A stretch of 64,000 bases of DNA. It comes from Caecitellus pseudoparvulus (Eukaryota > Protista > Bigyra: Bicosoecida). Position numbers and translations under genes: made by a program. Shown in pieces: positions 39,739-48,135 of this stretch. Within the stretch, counting starts at the first letter, position 1; every line of letters starts with the position of its first letter. The stretch spans positions 248,001-312,000 of the forward strand of contig CBFFRQ010000062.1 in the NCBI GenBank assembly GCA_965644315.1. The letters are read 5' to 3'. The notes beneath the pieces are model-generated. The model ran no database searches. It saw only the letters and a program-made list of their open reading frames with translations, and had not been told where the DNA came from.

Positions 39739-41353
39739 CTCTTCCTGGTGTGCGGAGGCAGGGGGCTCGCTGCCTGTGGCGCTAGTCGCCCACAGTGAAG
39801 ATGGTGTGAGCGCGCTGAAGTGGGAGCCACCCCGCCAAACCGACAGTGCGCTTGAAGGTGTTCGAGGCCCAACTACCGAGATGCTAGCCTCTAGGCATGG
39901 GAGCAGAGGTTGAGGTGTTGGATCGTTTGGCACTGCGCAGCGCTTGTCATTGCTCCGCTTGCCGTGGGAGGGGGGCAGTGGTGTGTGTGTGTGCGGACGC
40001 ACGATTCCCCTCCAGCGCGAGCTGCTCTTCTTAACCCCAGGAATTAGCCATCCTCTTCTCGTGCAGGCTGGAGGGCTTGATTTCATCGTCCCGGTGTATT
40101 CCACCGCACTTGCACGCGGGCAGTGGGGAGCAGCCTCTGTAGGTGCTGCGGCAGCGCGGCATGTTCTTTCGCGCTCCAACTTCGTCTTGTGCAGCGCGCA
40201 GCAATGCGGCTACGGGACTTGTGCAGGTGGCCTGGAGCAGGTCCAGCCTTGCTGCTGGGGACTCAGTCTCGTGCATTTAGCCCATGGAGCGCCCCTTCCT
40301 GCAAGCACGATGGCTATGGATGCGGGTAAGCGGCAAAGTGCTCTTCGCCGGCGGCCGTGTCGCAGCGAACCCCTGCCAGAAACACAGGGAGCATGGAGTT
40401 AGGCTCCACCAGCATGCAGCGCTGCCTATCGCACGCTGGCAAGGTGCGATCCTTCCCCCATGGCACCCTATGCATGCCATTGCTTGACGGTCCATGCACT
40501 ATGCCGAGCAGCAGCGCCTCGTGTGGCGTGCAGCTGCTGGACTGTGTGCAGCCTTTCGCGTGCGCCTTGCAAGAGGGTTGCTCCTGCTGCTGCGTCCACT
40601 CTGACCAGCTTCTGGATCCCTCTTTGGTGGCTGGGGCTCTAGGCGGGGAGTAAAGAGTGCGTCTTGGCGCGTGTGCGCCCGGCCAAACCACTCTGCAAGC
40701 CCACGTTTGACGTGCTACCTCGCAAGCCGGTGGGCGGGAGGGAGCAACCGTGGTGCACTGCACTTGCTCGCTGGCGCAGCTGCAGCGCTTGGCCATGGCG
40801 CGGGCTAGAGGAAAGCATTGCAGGCGACTGACTGGCGGCACGACATTACGTGGCTTTACGTGTTGTCCACTACCACAGGTCCCGGAGAGAGGCTGTGAGA
40901 GCCAGTTTTAGGGGCCAGCTACTGGCCTCATTCGAGGCAAGCCCACACACCATGCGACTTGCTTTGAATGCAGCAGTCTGCCAAGTGCACCTTGGAGCAA
41001 AATGATGATAACTGGAGACTTGCTCCTGGGTGGAGTTTGTATCGCAGGGAACTGGGGCCTCATGGTCGTGTCAGCGCATGCACCAGCACGATGCAGTGAG
41101 AGGCCAGGCTGGAACCTCATTTCGCAGTCGGGCAACAATACAGAAATGAACAAATCAACGCATGCGAAGCTTCTGGCGCTGAGGTTGGCGCCGCCATTGC
41201 TCATGCACTCCACTGGCGCGACTCTTACAGCAGGTGGAAGTCCAGCAGCGGCTCAAGTCCCTTCAGAGGCGGCAAGACCGCCTTTGGTTCTGAAGGTCGC
41301 ATGCTTGACTTTCCGCAGTCAAGCTTGTGAGACCCCTGCTTCTGAAGTACGCT

Positions 41354-44300
41354 ATGTCGGCAAAACGAAGGTTCACCAAGCTGCGCCGGGTCATTGAGCG
41401 GCACTTTGACAGCAATGTGAGCACAGCAGCCCAGGCGTGCAGCGCCGTGCCCATGGGGTAGCAGCGAGCTGTGTTCTTGCGAAAAGGCTGATGCGAATCA
41501 CCCAGGTCTGTGCACGTGCACCCCCCCCACTGTGCCGCAGTTGCTGTTGGAAGCGCCAACGAATAGCGGCGCCGCGGGACAGTCCAGCGCAGGGCAAAGC
41601 AGTGCTGCCACGCCTTTGCAGCCTGCACAGCCGCTGGTGCCTCCCGGGAAGGCAGTTCCCATAGGAGACATCCTTTGTTGGGAAGACGTTGCAGCTTTGA
41701 CCCGTAGCCACGATGATGGTGCGTTCTGCGACGCAGGCATGCTGGATGAGGCGTGGTGTACCTGTCCGCAATTTCCGCATCCGCGCAGTTGTCAAGTGTT
41801 TAGACGAGTCTTTCATCTGCCAAGTTTCCCCTAAACGCACACACGTTGGTTTATACCCGCCTGATGTGCGTGCTCAGTTTGTTCAAGGGCAGCTGGCGTT
41901 CTACTTCTCGGACGAGCACTATGAAAGTCGAACGTACCCGAAACAGTACGCGGACGAGAATGGCTTCGTGCGCATCCGGGAGCTGTCGCAGTCAGGGCGC
42001 CTGCGAGCGATGGGTGCCACCCCAGCCATGGTCGCACAGGCGGCAGCTGCGTGCTCCTTGACTGTCCTTGCGCCTGACGCTCCTCCTCGCCTGCGCAAGG
42101 CCACACGCCACGAGCGAATCGCTGCAGCAGTGGTGCAGCTGCTCGCCCCCGAAACCGACCCCATTCGCTCCAACATTGCGCCGGGAGGGGATGCCCAGCT
42201 ATCAGACCAGTTCATTCGGGAGCACTGCAGTGCAACCCCCGGCGGGCTGCTGCGCCTGCGCCTGGTGGTGTCGTTGCCCCCGTTGGAGAATTGGGGCGCC
42301 ACCCCTCGAGAAGTGGCTGCTGCACTCACTGGCTGGGGCAGCGACGCACAGGCCCAGCGCGGCGGGGAGGCCAGCATGCCCAGCGAGCTGTCTGTCGAGG
42401 CAAAGGAAGACGGGGTGCTGCTGGCGGCTGCGGTGCCTTTTGACGCCATTGCGCGAAGCGACACCTGTCCCGTTCTGCTGCTGCACGTGCAGTCAGGGGA
42501 GCCCCCTTCCGAGGCGCGCAGCCTTCCAACCTCTGCTGCAGCCTCGGCCGTATGGGATGAGTGGGGTGTGTGTCTGGATGAAGGTGCGCGTCGCCGCATT
42601 GAGGCCATGGGAGCGGCTGTGCGAGCCGCGCGGGCTGAGGCGGCGGCCGCCCCACCCCCCCCTGCACAGCCGCCATGTAGTCAGCCCAGCAGTGCCACAA
42701 GCATGACCGGCGGGGACGCTGGGAGGTCGGCAGCTGCCTTGCTGGCAGGGGGCGCCGCTGTCGCTGCTGCGGCGCAGCGCATGGCGGCTGGGTCGGGGCA
42801 GCCGGGCGGCGAGGGGCGTGGCCTGTACACCTCTGTGGCCAGTCCTGGGTACATGCACGCTGGTCACTCGGCAGGCGTGGGTGTGCAGCTGCCCTTGCCC
42901 ATGGCCAGTCTGCACGGCTACGGGCAGCATGGCATGGCGATGATGATGGGCAGGTACCCCCACACAGTGGAGCGCGGGCAGATCCCTGACCTGCACCAGG
43001 CAGTGCAGCGCCCCCCTCCCCCTGAGCAGCAGGCAGTGCAAGCCCCCTCTGTGCCCGATGTTGTGGAGCAGGTGCGCTCGACAGAGCCTGGTGCTGACGT
43101 GGCCTTGCTGCGGCCCATCGTGCACCAAGTGGCGTGGCTGCTGTCCCCTGCTGTGCTGGTGGCTGATCGGTACCTGCAGCGGCAAGGCAGGACAGTTCAG
43201 GTGGACAGGGCTCAGTGGGTGCAGTGTGCTGCTGGCGACAGCGCCGCTGACAAGCGTGTGGGGTGGGCATTGGAGGACTTGGCGGCACACCCGCAGCTGG
43301 AGCTGGCGTTAACGGCAGCGCTGGCATCTATGTCTGATGACCAGCGACTGGACACAGATGACCCTTCAGCTCTGCTGCGGGTGGCGCTGGAATGGGGAGT
43401 GGAGCAGCTGCCAGTGTTTCTGGCACCTCCTGCCACTGCCACGGAGGCTCTCATGGTGGTTCTGTGTGGACCCTTCCCACCCCAGCGCCTGTGGACAGCC
43501 GTGGAACCCCAGCTTTACTCCGTTGCGGTGAACGAGCGAGGCTTGGGGGGCGGCGGGGAAAGCGAAGCTTGGCCCCTCGGCCGAGCAGACGAGACCACTC
43601 GGGGTCGTGTTTCAGGGTCCGATTCAGGGTCGGGCAAGGAGGGCAGTGGTGAGCGTAGCCCCGTGTCCATGAAGCTGTCCCCTTGGCACCTGGGTGTGGA
43701 TGCAGTTGGGGGCTCCTCGGTGCAAGTGGTCGTGGCACCGGCTGCGGTGGATGCGCTGGGCGGTGCGGAGGCGGTGCTGGATGCCCTGTCCACAGGGCGT
43801 GATGACACCAGCGCAGCCTCCACGGCCACCCCCACCTTCCCAGCTGACGCGCGTTTCATGGCCAGGGCTGCCAGCGGCGAGAGTGCCGACCTACTGGAGG
43901 CCACGGGTCTGGAGGAGGACGGCACCGCAGAAGGCTCCTCCATCCCCCCCCCTCACCGCGGCCTGCCGACACTGAACACGACCAACCTTCCTCGATTGCA
44001 CTCTGCAGGGTCCTCTGGCTCCCTCTCGTCAGAGACCAGTGGCGTGTGGGGCGGTGGCGCAGGTGGCCGGTCCATGCGATCGGGGGCAGTGCACATGGTC
44101 AGCCCCAGCGCCCGGGCCCTGCTGTCACTAGGGGGGACGACTCGCAATGTGAAGCGTGCAGACCGCCTGAGCATCAGCAGCGCCCCCGATGCGGCGCCTG
44201 GCGGGCACCCCTTGTACAGGTCCCACTCTGCTCCAGTCATGGGGGAGGGGTCAGCCCGGCGGGGGTCATGGGACGGGCGCACAGCGGGCATCGCCTTCCC

Positions 44301-46224
44301 AACTGCGCTGTCAGGGCCGCCGGACACTGACGACGCCTTGGCAGCTGCGGCAGCTGGTCTGCCCAGCACCGCGCAGTGGGCGACCCACACCGCCCGGCGT
44401 GGCAGCTTTGCCGCCGTGGACGAGCAGCAACAGACCCCCCCCTCCCAGCCGGCGCGGCAGTATGAGAGCAGCCAAGCAAGTTGGCACACAGCCATGAGCC
44501 CTGGGTCGGACGACAGTGATGGCGATGAGGGGGGCGACGATGGCTCTGCCCGGTCCGTTGCAGACTTGCTGCACCGCTCCCACAGCGGCGAGCACACCCA
44601 GCTAGCCCACGCGCTGCGGCATGCGGCAGTGGGCATGCAGCGCAGCATCGCGAGTGAGGGGCCGCCGCCTGGCCTAAGCATCGTATCACCTACGCCCGAC
44701 GCCCTGGTGCGCAGCCACTCCACGCAGTTGTCCAGTGACACGCCTCGCTCGGCCCTGGATGGCATCTCGGGGGAAGCCATCCCCTTCAATTCTGCCGGCT
44801 GGCTCAGCCCCAGTGCTGCCCATGCAGCTGGCACTGGACTTGGTCTAGGTCTTCCTTCTCGGGATGCCGCTGCCTGGAGTGCCCCCATGGCAGGGCCGGC
44901 ACAGACCTCCCTGCAACGCGTGCGCTCAGCCGAAATCCCGTTCATGGTCGCTGCGGCAGCGCTAGGCACGCCACTGGGCACCCCTCGCATGGCAGCTGGT
45001 TTGGGTGCGGAGGGTGGGGAGGAGGAAGGGGGTGTCGGGGAAGGGGGTGAGTCCCTCACTGACTCCGTGCGGTCCCCCACGTCAGTGCAGCCCCCCCCGC
45101 GCATCCTGGTGCTGCCTACGCTCCCCAGCAATGGACGCCCCGCATGGGATTTCTCAGCCATGTCCTGGAATGTGCTGGTTGACGCGCTGGCCGCAACGGG
45201 GGGCGAGACGGCCTCAGCACTGGCCACCAAAGTGTGGTCTTTCCGCGGCCCCCGCATCAAGAAACACCTACTTTACCACTGTCCCGACATTCTCGCACTA
45301 CAAGAGGTGCAGTGCGATGTGGCCGCCCACAGCCGTCAACGCCTTCGTTCTACGGCGTGGCCGGGGGTGTATGAAAACATCGGCTGGCGTGACCCGGTAC
45401 CGACCGGCGCTGCCTCCCACGCCACCTGGTTGGGCCGGGCCTTGCATGGTGCCGGGTACGATGTGTGCTTCGCTCCGCGCTGGGTGACCGGCAGTGTACG
45501 AAGCAAAGCATTCAATTTCGGCAACACAATCGCCTGGCGCAAGGCTGAATTCGAAGCTACTGCCATGTACAGCGTGCACTTGGCCCAGGCAGTCGCAGCT
45601 GTGAGCTCTCAGTGCGCTGCTGCACTGCCCAGTGATGTGTACCCGCAGGTCACACCGGTGGCCGTCTTGCGACACACCCGCACCGGAGCAGTACTGCTGG
45701 CTGCCTCCACCCACCTCAACGCCAATTGGCGCCAGCCCCACACGCAGCTGCTGCAGTGCGCTGGGCTGTCAGCCGCCCTCGCATCCCTCGCGGAGCACCA
45801 CTCCGCCTCAGCGATTACCTGCCTGGGGGACTTCAACAGCCTCCCCACGCACGCCTGCTACGAGTGGATGCTAAACTGCAGCCTGCTCGGAGACCACCCC
45901 ACCGTGAAGGACTTGGCGAAGTGCGGCCTCCTGCCTCCAGGCCAGCGTTTCACGGTGCCAGGGGTCGAGCTCACCTTCACGTCGGCGTATGCGCAGTGCA
46001 TGGGTCGGGAACCAGCCTACACCAACTACGTGCAGGGCTTCGAAGGCTGCTTGGACTACCTGTGGACCTGGCGCCTGGTGCCCATCTCCACGCTGAAGCC
46101 GCTGCCCGACGCCACCATGACTGCCTCGGGGTACCTTCCCAACCACCAAATCCCTTCAGACCACATCCCCTTGCTGGGTCTATTCAGGTTCGTGGATGGG
46201 GACCTCGTCACTGGTGGCCTCTAA
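41354..46224 (+). CDS. La-motif (LAM) x3-4 + CCR4/nocturnin/Angel/PDE12-type EEP phosphohydrolase fusion protein
   Basis: Introns 41417..41540 and 41719..41788 extend the 1503-aa ORF to MSAKRRFTK. Best LAM: QLAFYFSDEHY..Y.K...DENGFVRIREL....RLRAM..V..A. EEP motifs SWNVL, PDILALQEV, N.I.W.K..F, STHL.., GDFNS, SAY..EP.YTNY..F.G.LDY, LPN..IPSDHIPL. Confidence 0.85.
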
Positions 46225-47326
46225 TGCTTGCGCCTCGTCGCCAGGGCTGCCGCTGCAAGCTGCAGCAGCAAGCCACTCTGTCCTGTATGCTGCCGCCGCT
46301 GCGGCCCATTCACCAGCGGAGTGGCATGCCGGGCATTGGAAGGAGCTTGGGATGAGAACGGTGGTTGGAGTGCCAGTCAGACTGTGCCTGGCCAGGCACA
46401 GCCAGTGGGCTGTAGCTTCACACTGTGGGCATTGCCACGTGGGCCGGCCCATCTCACCACACACACAACACACCCGAGGCTGTGTGGAAGGGACAACAGC
46501 CCCCTCCACTGCTGCTTCCATCTCCCCCATGCTGCTGGCTTCGTCTTCCGCCTCATCCGCATCCGTTACGGACCCGGCCGAGCTGCCAGACCTCTCGCTG
46601 CCGGAGGTGGCGGTGGGAAGGCAACCTCCTGCTGCCCACGACCCCAAGATGTCTGGCACCGCTTCACTGCCGCTCCAAGATTGTAACAGCTCGGGGGTGG
46701 TGTGTAGCACAGTGGCAGGGGGGGGGCCACCAGGCAGGCCAGCAAAAGCCTGCGGTGGGCTGGGGTTGTGTGGGCTGTTCCTTTGCTGCGGAAGCGGGGC
46801 GGCCTCACCTTCACATGCCTTTCGTGCATGATTGCGACCGTCAACTGCATGTGGCACCAGGGAGCGCACTTGAGCAGGAAATGCAGCTCCCTCAGCCGTG
46901 CCAGAGCACCACGCCGAGAGCGCGGAAATTGACGCCGCACCTCTCTGAAGTGCACGCTGCGATCTGGGTGCTGCCCTGCTCAGCGATGGGAAGCTGGGAG
47001 TTGCTGATGAATGCAGCAAAGGTCTAAGTAGCTACACGCCACTCACATGCCCACTCGAATTGCAGGCCGACGGTTTGCGAGACAAACCCACGCACAACGG
47101 CAACAAATGACCAAGGCTGTCTCTTGCGTGTGCGGCGAGCCCCAGCTGTCACTTCGCCATTGTGCTGCCGCAAACGGCGATAGGGAGACACTGTGAAACC
47201 AATGTATGTGGCTGTGCTGCCCACTCTCGAAAGGCTCTCCAAACAATACACCATGCTCGGCGCTTGCTTCAGGGAGGCTGCCAGTGCCTCCACATGCTTG
47301 CCTTGCCGGGCGGCCACTGCTGCCAT
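46180..47326 (-). CDS. SLX1: SLX1 GIY-YIG structure-specific endonuclease with RING/PHD-like Zn finger
   Basis: VYCL.S..TYIGFTV.P.RRLRQHNG...GA.RT....PW, LQFEWA|WQHP. Introns 46976..47046 and 46750..46808. CCVC..CPQC...H..CLA..CPAC.....W. Confidence 0.93.
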
Positions 47327-47404
47327 GTGACAAAATGCAAGCAAATGCCAAAACATGCGAACCAACTGTGGCGTGCTTTTCTTGCCACCAAAAATATATG
47401 CGTC

Positions 47405-48135
47405 ATGGAACCTCTGCAGGCAAGCCACAGGTGCGATTCGCAGCACATCAAAGCGTGCCTGCACTTTGATGACCCCGCGCCGCCTCCACACTCACGGACA
47501 GGTTTAAAGATGCGTTTGCACGCTTTGCTTCCTTAGACCCCTCTGCCCAAGTGGCCCACGCTGCAGCCGCAGCAGCTGCTTCCAAGCAAGGCAGCGAACA
47601 TGAAGCGATTGAGCTGCCGCAAAGTGCACTGCACCAGGACACCAGGCAAGAAGTGCACAGCGCTTTGGTGGTGGTGTTCAAGCACCTAGCATTCCACGCA
47701 GCCAAGGTGGATCAAATTCCCACTGCTGTCTCAAACCTGGGCGTTGACGATGCAAGCGTGAGTGTGACAGCGAGCGGCCAGGACTGAGGTGCCCTGCACT
47801 GGCTTGCGCTGTCGCTCCCCACTTCACAGCTCACAGTCCTGGGGGACGAATGGGCAAAGCAAGGCACAGCCCTCATCGCGGCTTCCAAGAAACTCGCCTT
47901 GGGCACTCCTTGGATTTGCACCGACGTGGGGAGTCAGCTCAGCATTTGCCTGGGCTCGGACGCGGCAGCCAAAGCCAGTGACATGGCTGGCATGCTGCGC
48001 CTGCAGCTTCGCCAGGGGGCACAGGAAGGCGCCCCAGAGAAGCAGATCATTACCCAGATGGGACAAGAAGAACTGTACCAGTTACTGGTGCAGTTGGACA
48101 AGGTGCAGCAACAGCTTGACGCGCTGTCTGGCTAA
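47405..48135 (+). CDS. COMMD10: COMM-domain protein, COMMD10-like
   Basis: Introns 47431..47501 and 47758..47829 give a ~195-aa protein. C-terminal ..MGQEELYQLLVQLDKVQQQLDAL matches COMMD10 (ELFDFYNKLETIQAQLDSL). The COMM Trp is replaced (DVGSQL vs .VGWQL). Confidence 0.75.

Follow-up and report, generated by a model that had tools for sequence, protein, structure and literature searches.

A divergent La-motif array joined to a CCR4-type nuclease in the bicosoecid Caecitellus pseudoparvulus, a lengthened member of a wider protist family

What might a CCR4-type nuclease do when an array of La motifs (LAMs) stands where Ccr4 has its leucine-rich repeat (LRR)? The question is raised by a gene at positions 41354-46224 (+ strand) of a 64,000-nucleotide stretch of the genome of the bicosoecid Caecitellus pseudoparvulus (assembly GCA_965644315.1, contig CBFFRQ010000062.1, positions 248,001 to 312,000; hereafter the window). 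The LRR of Ccr4 docks the enzyme on Caf1, and Ccr4 needs the CCR4-NOT scaffold. LAMs, to our knowledge, have been described as readers or protectors of RNA 3' ends that always occur with an RNA recognition motif (RRM) or, in LARP1, alone. Here we report that the window gene, which has three exons and a product of about 1558 amino acids, is real and expressed, and that by sequence comparison it is a divergent and greatly lengthened member of a wider protist family of La-array/Ccr4-nuclease proteins. This family is recurrent and apparently undescribed. We favor, with moderate confidence, the interpretation that the window protein combines a divergent La array with an active Ccr4-type 3'-exonuclease, probably a deadenylase, which is guided by its own LAM array.

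An initial annotation, made from the nucleotide sequence alone, had proposed a single spliced gene at this place, and the gene structure bears this out. Most of the protein is encoded by an open reading frame (ORF) at 41713-46224 (+ strand) with 1503 open codons, in a region with a G+C content of 57-71%; because stops would account for about 2.5% of random codons at this composition, a frame of this length is beyond chance. Two small upstream exons, which we found by translated comparison with two syntenic orthologous loci (L001 and L002), are kept in both of these loci. The resulting model is as follows.

41354-41416, + strand: exon 1, beginning with ATG 41354, the first in-frame ATG after a stop; 21 amino acids corresponding to helix alpha-1 of LAM1
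41417-41540, + strand: intron 1, 124 nucleotides, GT..AG
41541-41718, + strand: exon 2, a low-complexity insert followed by the middle of LAM1 (compare the family consensus GxVP(L/I)..L..F)
41719-41788, + strand: intron 2, 70 nucleotides, GT..AG, with the signals GTGCGT and CGCAG
41789-46224, + strand: exon 3, the remaining coding sequence, lying inside the 1503-codon ORF, with the stop codon at 46222-46224

The exon 1 peptide is 65-74% identical in L001 and L002, with its donor GTGAGC at 41417, and the last 30 residues of exon 2 are 57% identical in L002. We compared positions 41200-46400 (5201 letters) with four public runs, including seawater metatranscriptomes. Both introns were seen as joints in metatranscriptome contigs: intron 1 as 41416>41541 (X2 record 9, flanks of 217 and 167 nucleotides), and intron 2 as 41717>41788, cut one base further right (X1 record 2, shorter flank of 27 nucleotides). 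Other contigs were colinear with exon 3 at many places and contained no additional joints. The contigs differed from the window by 0-3% in the coding part and by about 8% in the 5' leader, and therefore represent close marine relatives, not the same strain. In the 5' leader and first exon (41200-41416), contigs of two seawater samples shared 17 identical differences (about 8%). Outside the window the continuous ORF was also found in two independent metagenome assemblies and one Logan contig.

The product is organized into an N-terminal La array, a long linker and a C-terminal nuclease.

41789-41859, + strand: C-terminal wing of LAM1, a helix plus a beta-hairpin that aligns to the C-terminal half of family LAM-a
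41860-42117, + strand (ORF residues 50-135): LAM2, a bona fide La motif
42106-42429, + strand (ORF residues 132-239): LAM3, a divergent La motif
43099-43482, + strand: unit 4, a conserved block, WLLSPAVL..D.YLQR ... DLA.HPQ.E.AL
43510-45087, + strand (ORF residues 600-1125): linker rich in Ala, Ser and Gly
45133-46197, + strand (ORF residues 1141-1495): CCR4-type EEP nuclease, Pfam PF03372
N 45169, E 45304, H 45712, D 45829, N 45835, D 46054, D 46159 and H 46162, + strand: catalytic codons of the nuclease

Up to four La-motif-like units had been proposed in the initial annotation. All four lie at the places given there; judged from profile comparisons and a predicted structure, LAM2 is certain, LAM3 is well supported, LAM1 is probable and unit 4 is uncertain. 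Pfam La matched LAM2 at ORF residues 59-111 (E 2.6e-8, 34 bits; gathering score 37.1 bits), and did not match units 1, 3 and 4 when each was searched alone. LAM2 was also recognized by the family LAM profile described below (E 1.8e-10; hhalign probability 96.5%). An AlphaFold2 model computed from a 23-sequence alignment that included family members had a mean predicted local distance difference test (pLDDT) score of 82.9 and a predicted template modeling score of 0.75; a model from three orthologues only (alignment A3) had a pLDDT of 37.5 and was unusable. In the former model, the predicted LAM2 (residues 25-108) superposed on the LaM of LARP1 with a Z score of 12.2 and a root mean square deviation of 1.6 Å over 81 residues, and matched the structures of La, LARP4, LARP6, LARP7 and Slr1 with Z scores of 10-12; it thus shows the LAM fold, a winged helix with the additional helices alpha-1' and alpha-4. 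It is followed in the model by another winged helix, not by an RRM, in keeping with the tandem LAMs that had been claimed.

That winged helix is LAM3, in which predicted helices and strands occur in LAM order with a core pLDDT of 87-94, interrupted after helix alpha-1 by about 13 inserted residues that are disordered. LAM3 aligned to family LAM-c (hhalign probability 86.8%, P 4e-6), and the N-terminal stretch as a whole was colinear with the C-terminal half of LAM-a, LAM-b and LAM-c (97.9% over 178 columns), an arrangement with which MAFFT agreed. In the structure search only generic winged-helix matches were listed for LAM3 (Z 5-7), since the search aligns every chain a single time and LAM2 had taken up the La entries. 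LAM1 is split by both introns and was assessed exon by exon. Its pieces are colinear on the LAM profile (exon 1 at positions 5-15, exon 2 at 35-55 and the start of exon 3 at 60-79), each being weak alone; a short conserved stretch replaces the usual N-L-x-x-D-x-F-L segment, and after it comes a low-complexity insert. In the model the exon 3 piece (residues 1-23) forms a helix and two strands, with a pLDDT above 90. For unit 4, hhalign aligned only 26-32 columns, with a probability of 34-63% and P values of 7e-5 to 4e-4, and a second colinear piece had a P of 0.13. The block is kept in both orthologues and may be a degenerate LAM remnant. As a side observation, family LAMs weakly match the N-terminal winged helix of the tRNA 2'-phosphotransferase Tpt1/KptA (P0049 residues 27-58, Pfam 27.7 bits), and the LAM2 model (residues 26-106) matches a Tpt1 structure with a Z score of 8.0; this common winged-helix shape could mislead automatic annotation.

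At the other end of the protein, Exo_endo_phos (PF03372) matched ORF residues 1150-1484 with 25-30 bits, against a cut-off of 24.5 bits. As the initial annotation had stated, the catalytic set is complete: all eight EEP residues (N1153, E1198, H1334, D1373, N1375, D1448, D1483 and H1484) are in place and do not vary among the orthologues. The invariant columns of the La-EEP family likewise include N, E, H, D, N, D, D and H. Pfam found no LRR, RRM or zinc finger (LRR families being tested to E 1), so the nuclease stands as a CCR4-type EEP without an LRR, and an LRR-type or MYND-type CCR4 identity was ruled out. We built a nuclease profile of the window clade, that is, the window and its two orthologues, and ran it against solved structures. 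The matches were PDE12 (1.6e-14), CNOT6 (4.5e-14), ANGEL2 (5.9e-13), yeast Ccr4 (5e-12) and nocturnin (5e-7), which by sequence places the nuclease in the CCR4 clade of EEP enzymes. With the broader La-EEP family profile the best match in the PDB was yeast Ccr4 (E 2.7e-73, 251 bits), CNOT6/6L (about 1e-56) and PDE12 reached about 197 bits, and Angel2 and nocturnin about 167 bits. The window nuclease aligned to this family with an hhalign probability of 100% (E 1.3e-46).

The family itself came to light when the window-clade nuclease profile was searched against 1.84 billion representative proteins. After the orthologues the score fell from 679 to 147 bits, and the top non-self matches were La-bearing proteins. 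Among the 76 best remaining matches, Pfam La was present in 20 (best E 2e-38), an LRR in 3 and a MYND-like zf-C6H2 in 3. Family members (for example P0103, P0047, P0006 and P0011) have 560-1160 residues, most of them 600-800, with between one and three significant La matches ahead of the nuclease. A family LAM profile, which we built from the La-bearing members with the window clade left out, detected two or three LAMs, each about 90 residues long and abutting the next, with the nuclease following within 20-100 residues, in about 25 clusters. Three abutting LAMs are the commonest arrangement, in about 15 of these, and neither an RRM nor an LRR accompanies the array. The clusters are 50%-identity representatives in public data and number at least 25. 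Each of the three LAM slots of the profile matched solved La/LARP motifs, the best PDB matches of LAM-c being LARP7 and genuine La. The sequences come from metatranscriptome contigs, JGI and ENA metagenomes, one NCBI metagenome assembly, MERC and EukProt, and some had been automatically annotated by JGI as 'mRNA deadenylase subunit Ccr4'. In short members La and EEP lie together on one contig of transcript size, about 2.2 kb. In the window protein, by comparison, the gap from array to nuclease is about 900 residues, versus 20-100 in the wider family.

We placed 108 nuclease domains in a maximum-likelihood tree. The 25 La-bearing rows, window clade included, all fell in one half of it, and none of the other 60 rows, which include the one LRR-CCR4 identified in our searches (P0004), bears La. 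The rows that lack La inside the La half are for the most part truncated at the N terminus, or else Pfam matches nothing in their N-terminal regions. The architecture had been called novel in the initial annotation. No paper describing a La+CCR4, La+EEP, La+nuclease or La+deadenylase architecture was found in the literature searched, although it may be noted elsewhere, for example in InterPro architecture tables; the fusion is not, however, peculiar to this gene, as at least 25 clusters share it. Word-index protein searches with alignments A1 and A5 matched only the query, and the ESM Atlas, searched by features and by shape, returned ordinary EEP or LARP clusters only, with no La+EEP cluster of at least 50 members. 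A survey of La and LARPs across eukaryotes mentions neither a nuclease fusion nor tandem LAMs (Deragon 2020, PMC7928011).

Two orthologues of 1932 and 1943 amino acids, both from marine metagenome assemblies, have the same whole layout as the window protein, with 41% overall identity. At both loci (L001, 12215-17421; L002, 7601-13102) a convergent SLX1 (GIY-YIG) gene comes next after the La-EEP gene, and a PP2C gene after that. SLX1 also lies downstream of the La-EEP gene in the window and, as this neighbor is common to all three, we regard the genes as syntenic orthologues. Identity to the orthologues varies strongly along the protein: LAM2 is its most conserved part (72-74%), followed by the C-terminal piece of LAM1 (about 61%), the nuclease (54-55%), unit 4 (38%), LAM3 (34-36%) and the linker (31-33%). 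The 30.6-Mb assembly contains no other gene combining La and EEP. A separate EEP paralogue, represented by a 956-residue ORF, is present on contig C30 (68266-69459, minus strand; L006, 1098-3965, minus strand; EEP 77 bits). Its match to the MYND-like zf-C6H2 is weak (20.6 bits, below the cut-off), and judging from its sequence it is likely the plant-type canonical CCR4 of this genome. Since the genome has this separate CCR4, the La-EEP gene is an extra paralogue and not the canonical one.

The window protein thus shares parts with several known systems. With Ccr4, CNOT6 and CNOT6L it has in common the EEP fold and every catalytic residue (N, E, H, D-x-N, D, D-H), whereas they have an LRR where the window protein has its La-motif array, and the nuclease of the LRR-CCR4 P0004 lies in the other half of the tree. 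Plant-type CCR4, a deadenylase, is likewise an EEP protein without an LRR, but it has a zf-C6H2, which the window protein lacks. LARP1, fission-yeast Slr1 and budding-yeast Slf1/Sro9 resemble LAM2 in having a LaM without an adjacent RRM, and in a search with a three-sequence profile LAM2 was nearest in sequence to Slr1 (E 0.002) and LARP1 (0.15). The window protein has no DM15/HEAT module, its LAMs are in tandem, and it carries a nuclease, whereas the role of LARP1 and LARP4 is to protect tails. Genuine La, LARP4, LARP6 and LARP7 have the winged-helix LAM fold in common with LAM2 (the Z scores of 10-12 given above), but in these proteins it is part of a La module (LAM plus RRM), whereas no RRM follows any LAM of the window protein. 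PDE12, Angel2 and nocturnin are in the same EEP clade as the window nuclease, and none of them has La motifs. PDE12 is mitochondrial, whereas the window protein begins directly with LAM1; a PDE12-like mitochondrial targeting was ruled out, as the protein starts with helix alpha-1 of LAM1.

The roughly 900 residues between array and nuclease are mostly disordered, and the linker has no match to any Pfam family. It contains conserved islands (GTGLGLGLPS; VAAAALGTP..TPR; LL.R..SG....L..ALR.AAV..QR), and no PAM2 motif was seen by eye in alignment A1. The initial annotation had listed RxxS-type sites in the linker and read them as targets of 14-3-3 proteins or protein kinase A. The listed sites exist, and the orthologues retain only about 3 of the 7 as RxxS. 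The case for regulation fared less well: RxxS is not significantly enriched (8 observed versus 4.7 expected, P 0.08), and the enrichment of R[RS]xS (5 versus 0.9, P 0.0035) concerns a pattern picked after the data had been seen. A phospho-switch of this kind is therefore weakly supported and, on the sequence, a speculation.

How might such a protein work? In the interpretation that we favor, the nuclease would be active as a Ccr4-like 3'-5' exoribonuclease that depends on Mg2+, and most probably as a deadenylase, brought to RNA by its own LAM array instead of by an LRR-CAF1/NOT tether; the long linker would allow it to act on the 3' end of an RNA that the array or partner proteins hold. As substrate, poly(A) is the likeliest candidate because the family nuclease is nearest to Ccr4 and LAM2 is nearest to the poly(A)-binding LARP1/Slr1 type. 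The initial annotation had gone further and proposed a 3'-end reader-eraser outside CCR4-NOT. Because the LAMs are in tandem and have no RRM, while the EEP domain is intact and has no LRR, it is reasonable to read the protein as a self-targeting enzyme of RNA 3' ends that would work outside CCR4-NOT. For the family as a whole we would put forward, tentatively, that La-array/CCR4 proteins are undescribed autonomous RNA 3'-end reader-erasers, widespread in marine protists and independent of CCR4-NOT: RRM-less tandem LAMs would bind the 3' end or tail of an RNA and pass it to the nuclease on the same chain, with the two halves lying about 900 residues apart in the window protein, where the linker may be regulated.

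A number of observations weigh against the favored interpretation, among them those on the 3'-end pocket. We mapped six conserved residues onto the LAM profile, Q20, Y23, Y24, D33, F35 and F55, which form the 3'-end pocket of human La. LAM2 has Q, F, Y, R, Y and S at these positions (R at D33 and S at F55). In LAM3 only D33 and F35 remain, Q20, Y23 and Y24 being absent, and LAM1 has V, R and H at the three positions of helix alpha-1 (Q20, Y23 and Y24). The full pocket is thus present in no LAM of the window clade, so 3'-end reading by the window protein, a part of the earlier proposal, is not established. In the wider family, D33 is mostly retained, by 9-12 of 14 proteins for each slot; Q20 is retained by 4-8 of 14 and, like the aromatic pocket residues, occurs in about half of the LAMs. 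To be set on the same side, the conservation of LAM3 among the orthologues (34-36%) is barely above that of the linker (about 31%); the split that unites the La-bearing nucleases has a Shimodaira-Hasegawa-like approximate likelihood ratio support of only 76-80%; and the window clade sits on a long branch (1.63). The window-clade nuclease profile alone does not separate PDE12, CNOT6 and Angel2. Finally, none of the metatranscriptome contigs compared spans LAM to EEP, and a single transcript is for this reason inferred and not directly seen.

We ranked the alternatives in the order of other 3' ends, a scaffold role of degenerate LAMs and a non-RNA substrate. The same architecture could trim or repair RNA 3' ends other than poly(A), such as the oligo(U) tails of Pol III or small nuclear RNA transcripts, 2',3'-cyclic phosphates as in Angel2, or 2'-5' linkages as in PDE12. 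The almost equal scores of PDE12, CNOT6 and Angel2 with the window-clade profile would fit this, as would the reading of UUU-3'OH by genuine La LAMs and the best PDB matches of family LAM-c, LARP7 and genuine La. The broader profile nevertheless prefers Ccr4/CNOT6 (251 and 197 bits) over Angel2/nocturnin (167 bits), LAM2 resembles the poly(A)-binding LARP1/Slr1 type most closely, and a PDE12-like mitochondrial role is opposed by the lack of an N-terminal targeting peptide, the protein having helix alpha-1 of LAM1 at its start; we consider this alternative unlikely. The degenerate pocket residues in every window-clade LAM raise a different possibility, that the LAMs of this lineage have lost RNA 3'-end binding and are now protein-binding or structural, with the nuclease targeted by partners of the linker, perhaps in a phosphorylation-dependent manner. 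The very long linker has conserved short motifs, three of them RxxS, and R[RS]xS is over-represented, albeit as a post hoc pattern, while RxxS overall is not. LAM2, however, is the most conserved part of the protein and retains Q, F/Y, Y and F in its helix alpha-1, and in LARP1 and yeast Slf1/Sro9 RNA binding by the LAM is aided by neighboring regions (PMC7928011), which also argues against a mere scaffold. On balance we judge the loss of RNA binding to be improbable.

We gave two further explanations less weight still. The EEP domain could be a small-molecule or lipid phosphatase, for example a nocturnin-like NADP(H) 2'-phosphatase, with the LAMs as unrelated baggage. Nocturnin does belong to the same EEP clade and was matched, but as the weakest CCR4-clade match of the window-clade profile (E 5e-7) and with 167 versus 251 bits in the family profile, and the fusion to an RNA-binding motif across about 25 clusters argues for an RNA substrate; a phosphatase is accordingly very improbable. 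The fusion might, lastly, be an artefact of read-through between adjacent La and EEP genes or of misassembly, as could be suspected from the lack of an RNA contig spanning both ends and from the low complexity of the middle 900 residues. With a frame open for 1503 codons, the same continuous ORF in two independent metagenome assemblies and a Logan contig, and short family members in which one contig of about 2.2 kb holds both La and EEP, we find this hardly credible. A La-guided, Ccr4-type 3'-exonuclease, probably a deadenylase, remains the interpretation that we prefer.

The surroundings of the gene and the rest of the assembly add some details. In the window, SLX1 appears as two abutting minus-strand ORFs in different frames, with the GIY-YIG domain at 47024-47491 and the SLX1_C zinc finger at 46180-47019; a short intron presumably lies near 47020, and the L002 orthologue was called as one product of 475 amino acids. 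The last 45 nucleotides of the La-EEP coding sequence (46180-46224) overlap the convergent minus-strand ORF with the SLX1 C-terminal domain, if the stop of that ORF is real. Elsewhere in the assembly, a small ORF on contig C94 (91964-92203, minus strand; L007, 1171-1680, minus strand) has a clear La domain at its very start (Pfam 53 bits) and probably represents a single exon of an ordinary La or LARP gene.

The fusion of a La array to a Ccr4-type nuclease suggests a self-contained way of selecting and shortening RNA tails. As its members are found repeatedly in ocean metatranscriptomes, the family is expressed in abundant marine protists. It would extend the classifications of both LARPs and deadenylases, and it lets one ask, in a natural setting, what LAMs are capable of when no RRM accompanies them. 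Within it, the window member shows how such an enzyme may drift, with degenerate pockets, an intron-split LAM and a huge linker around a catalytic center that has stayed intact.

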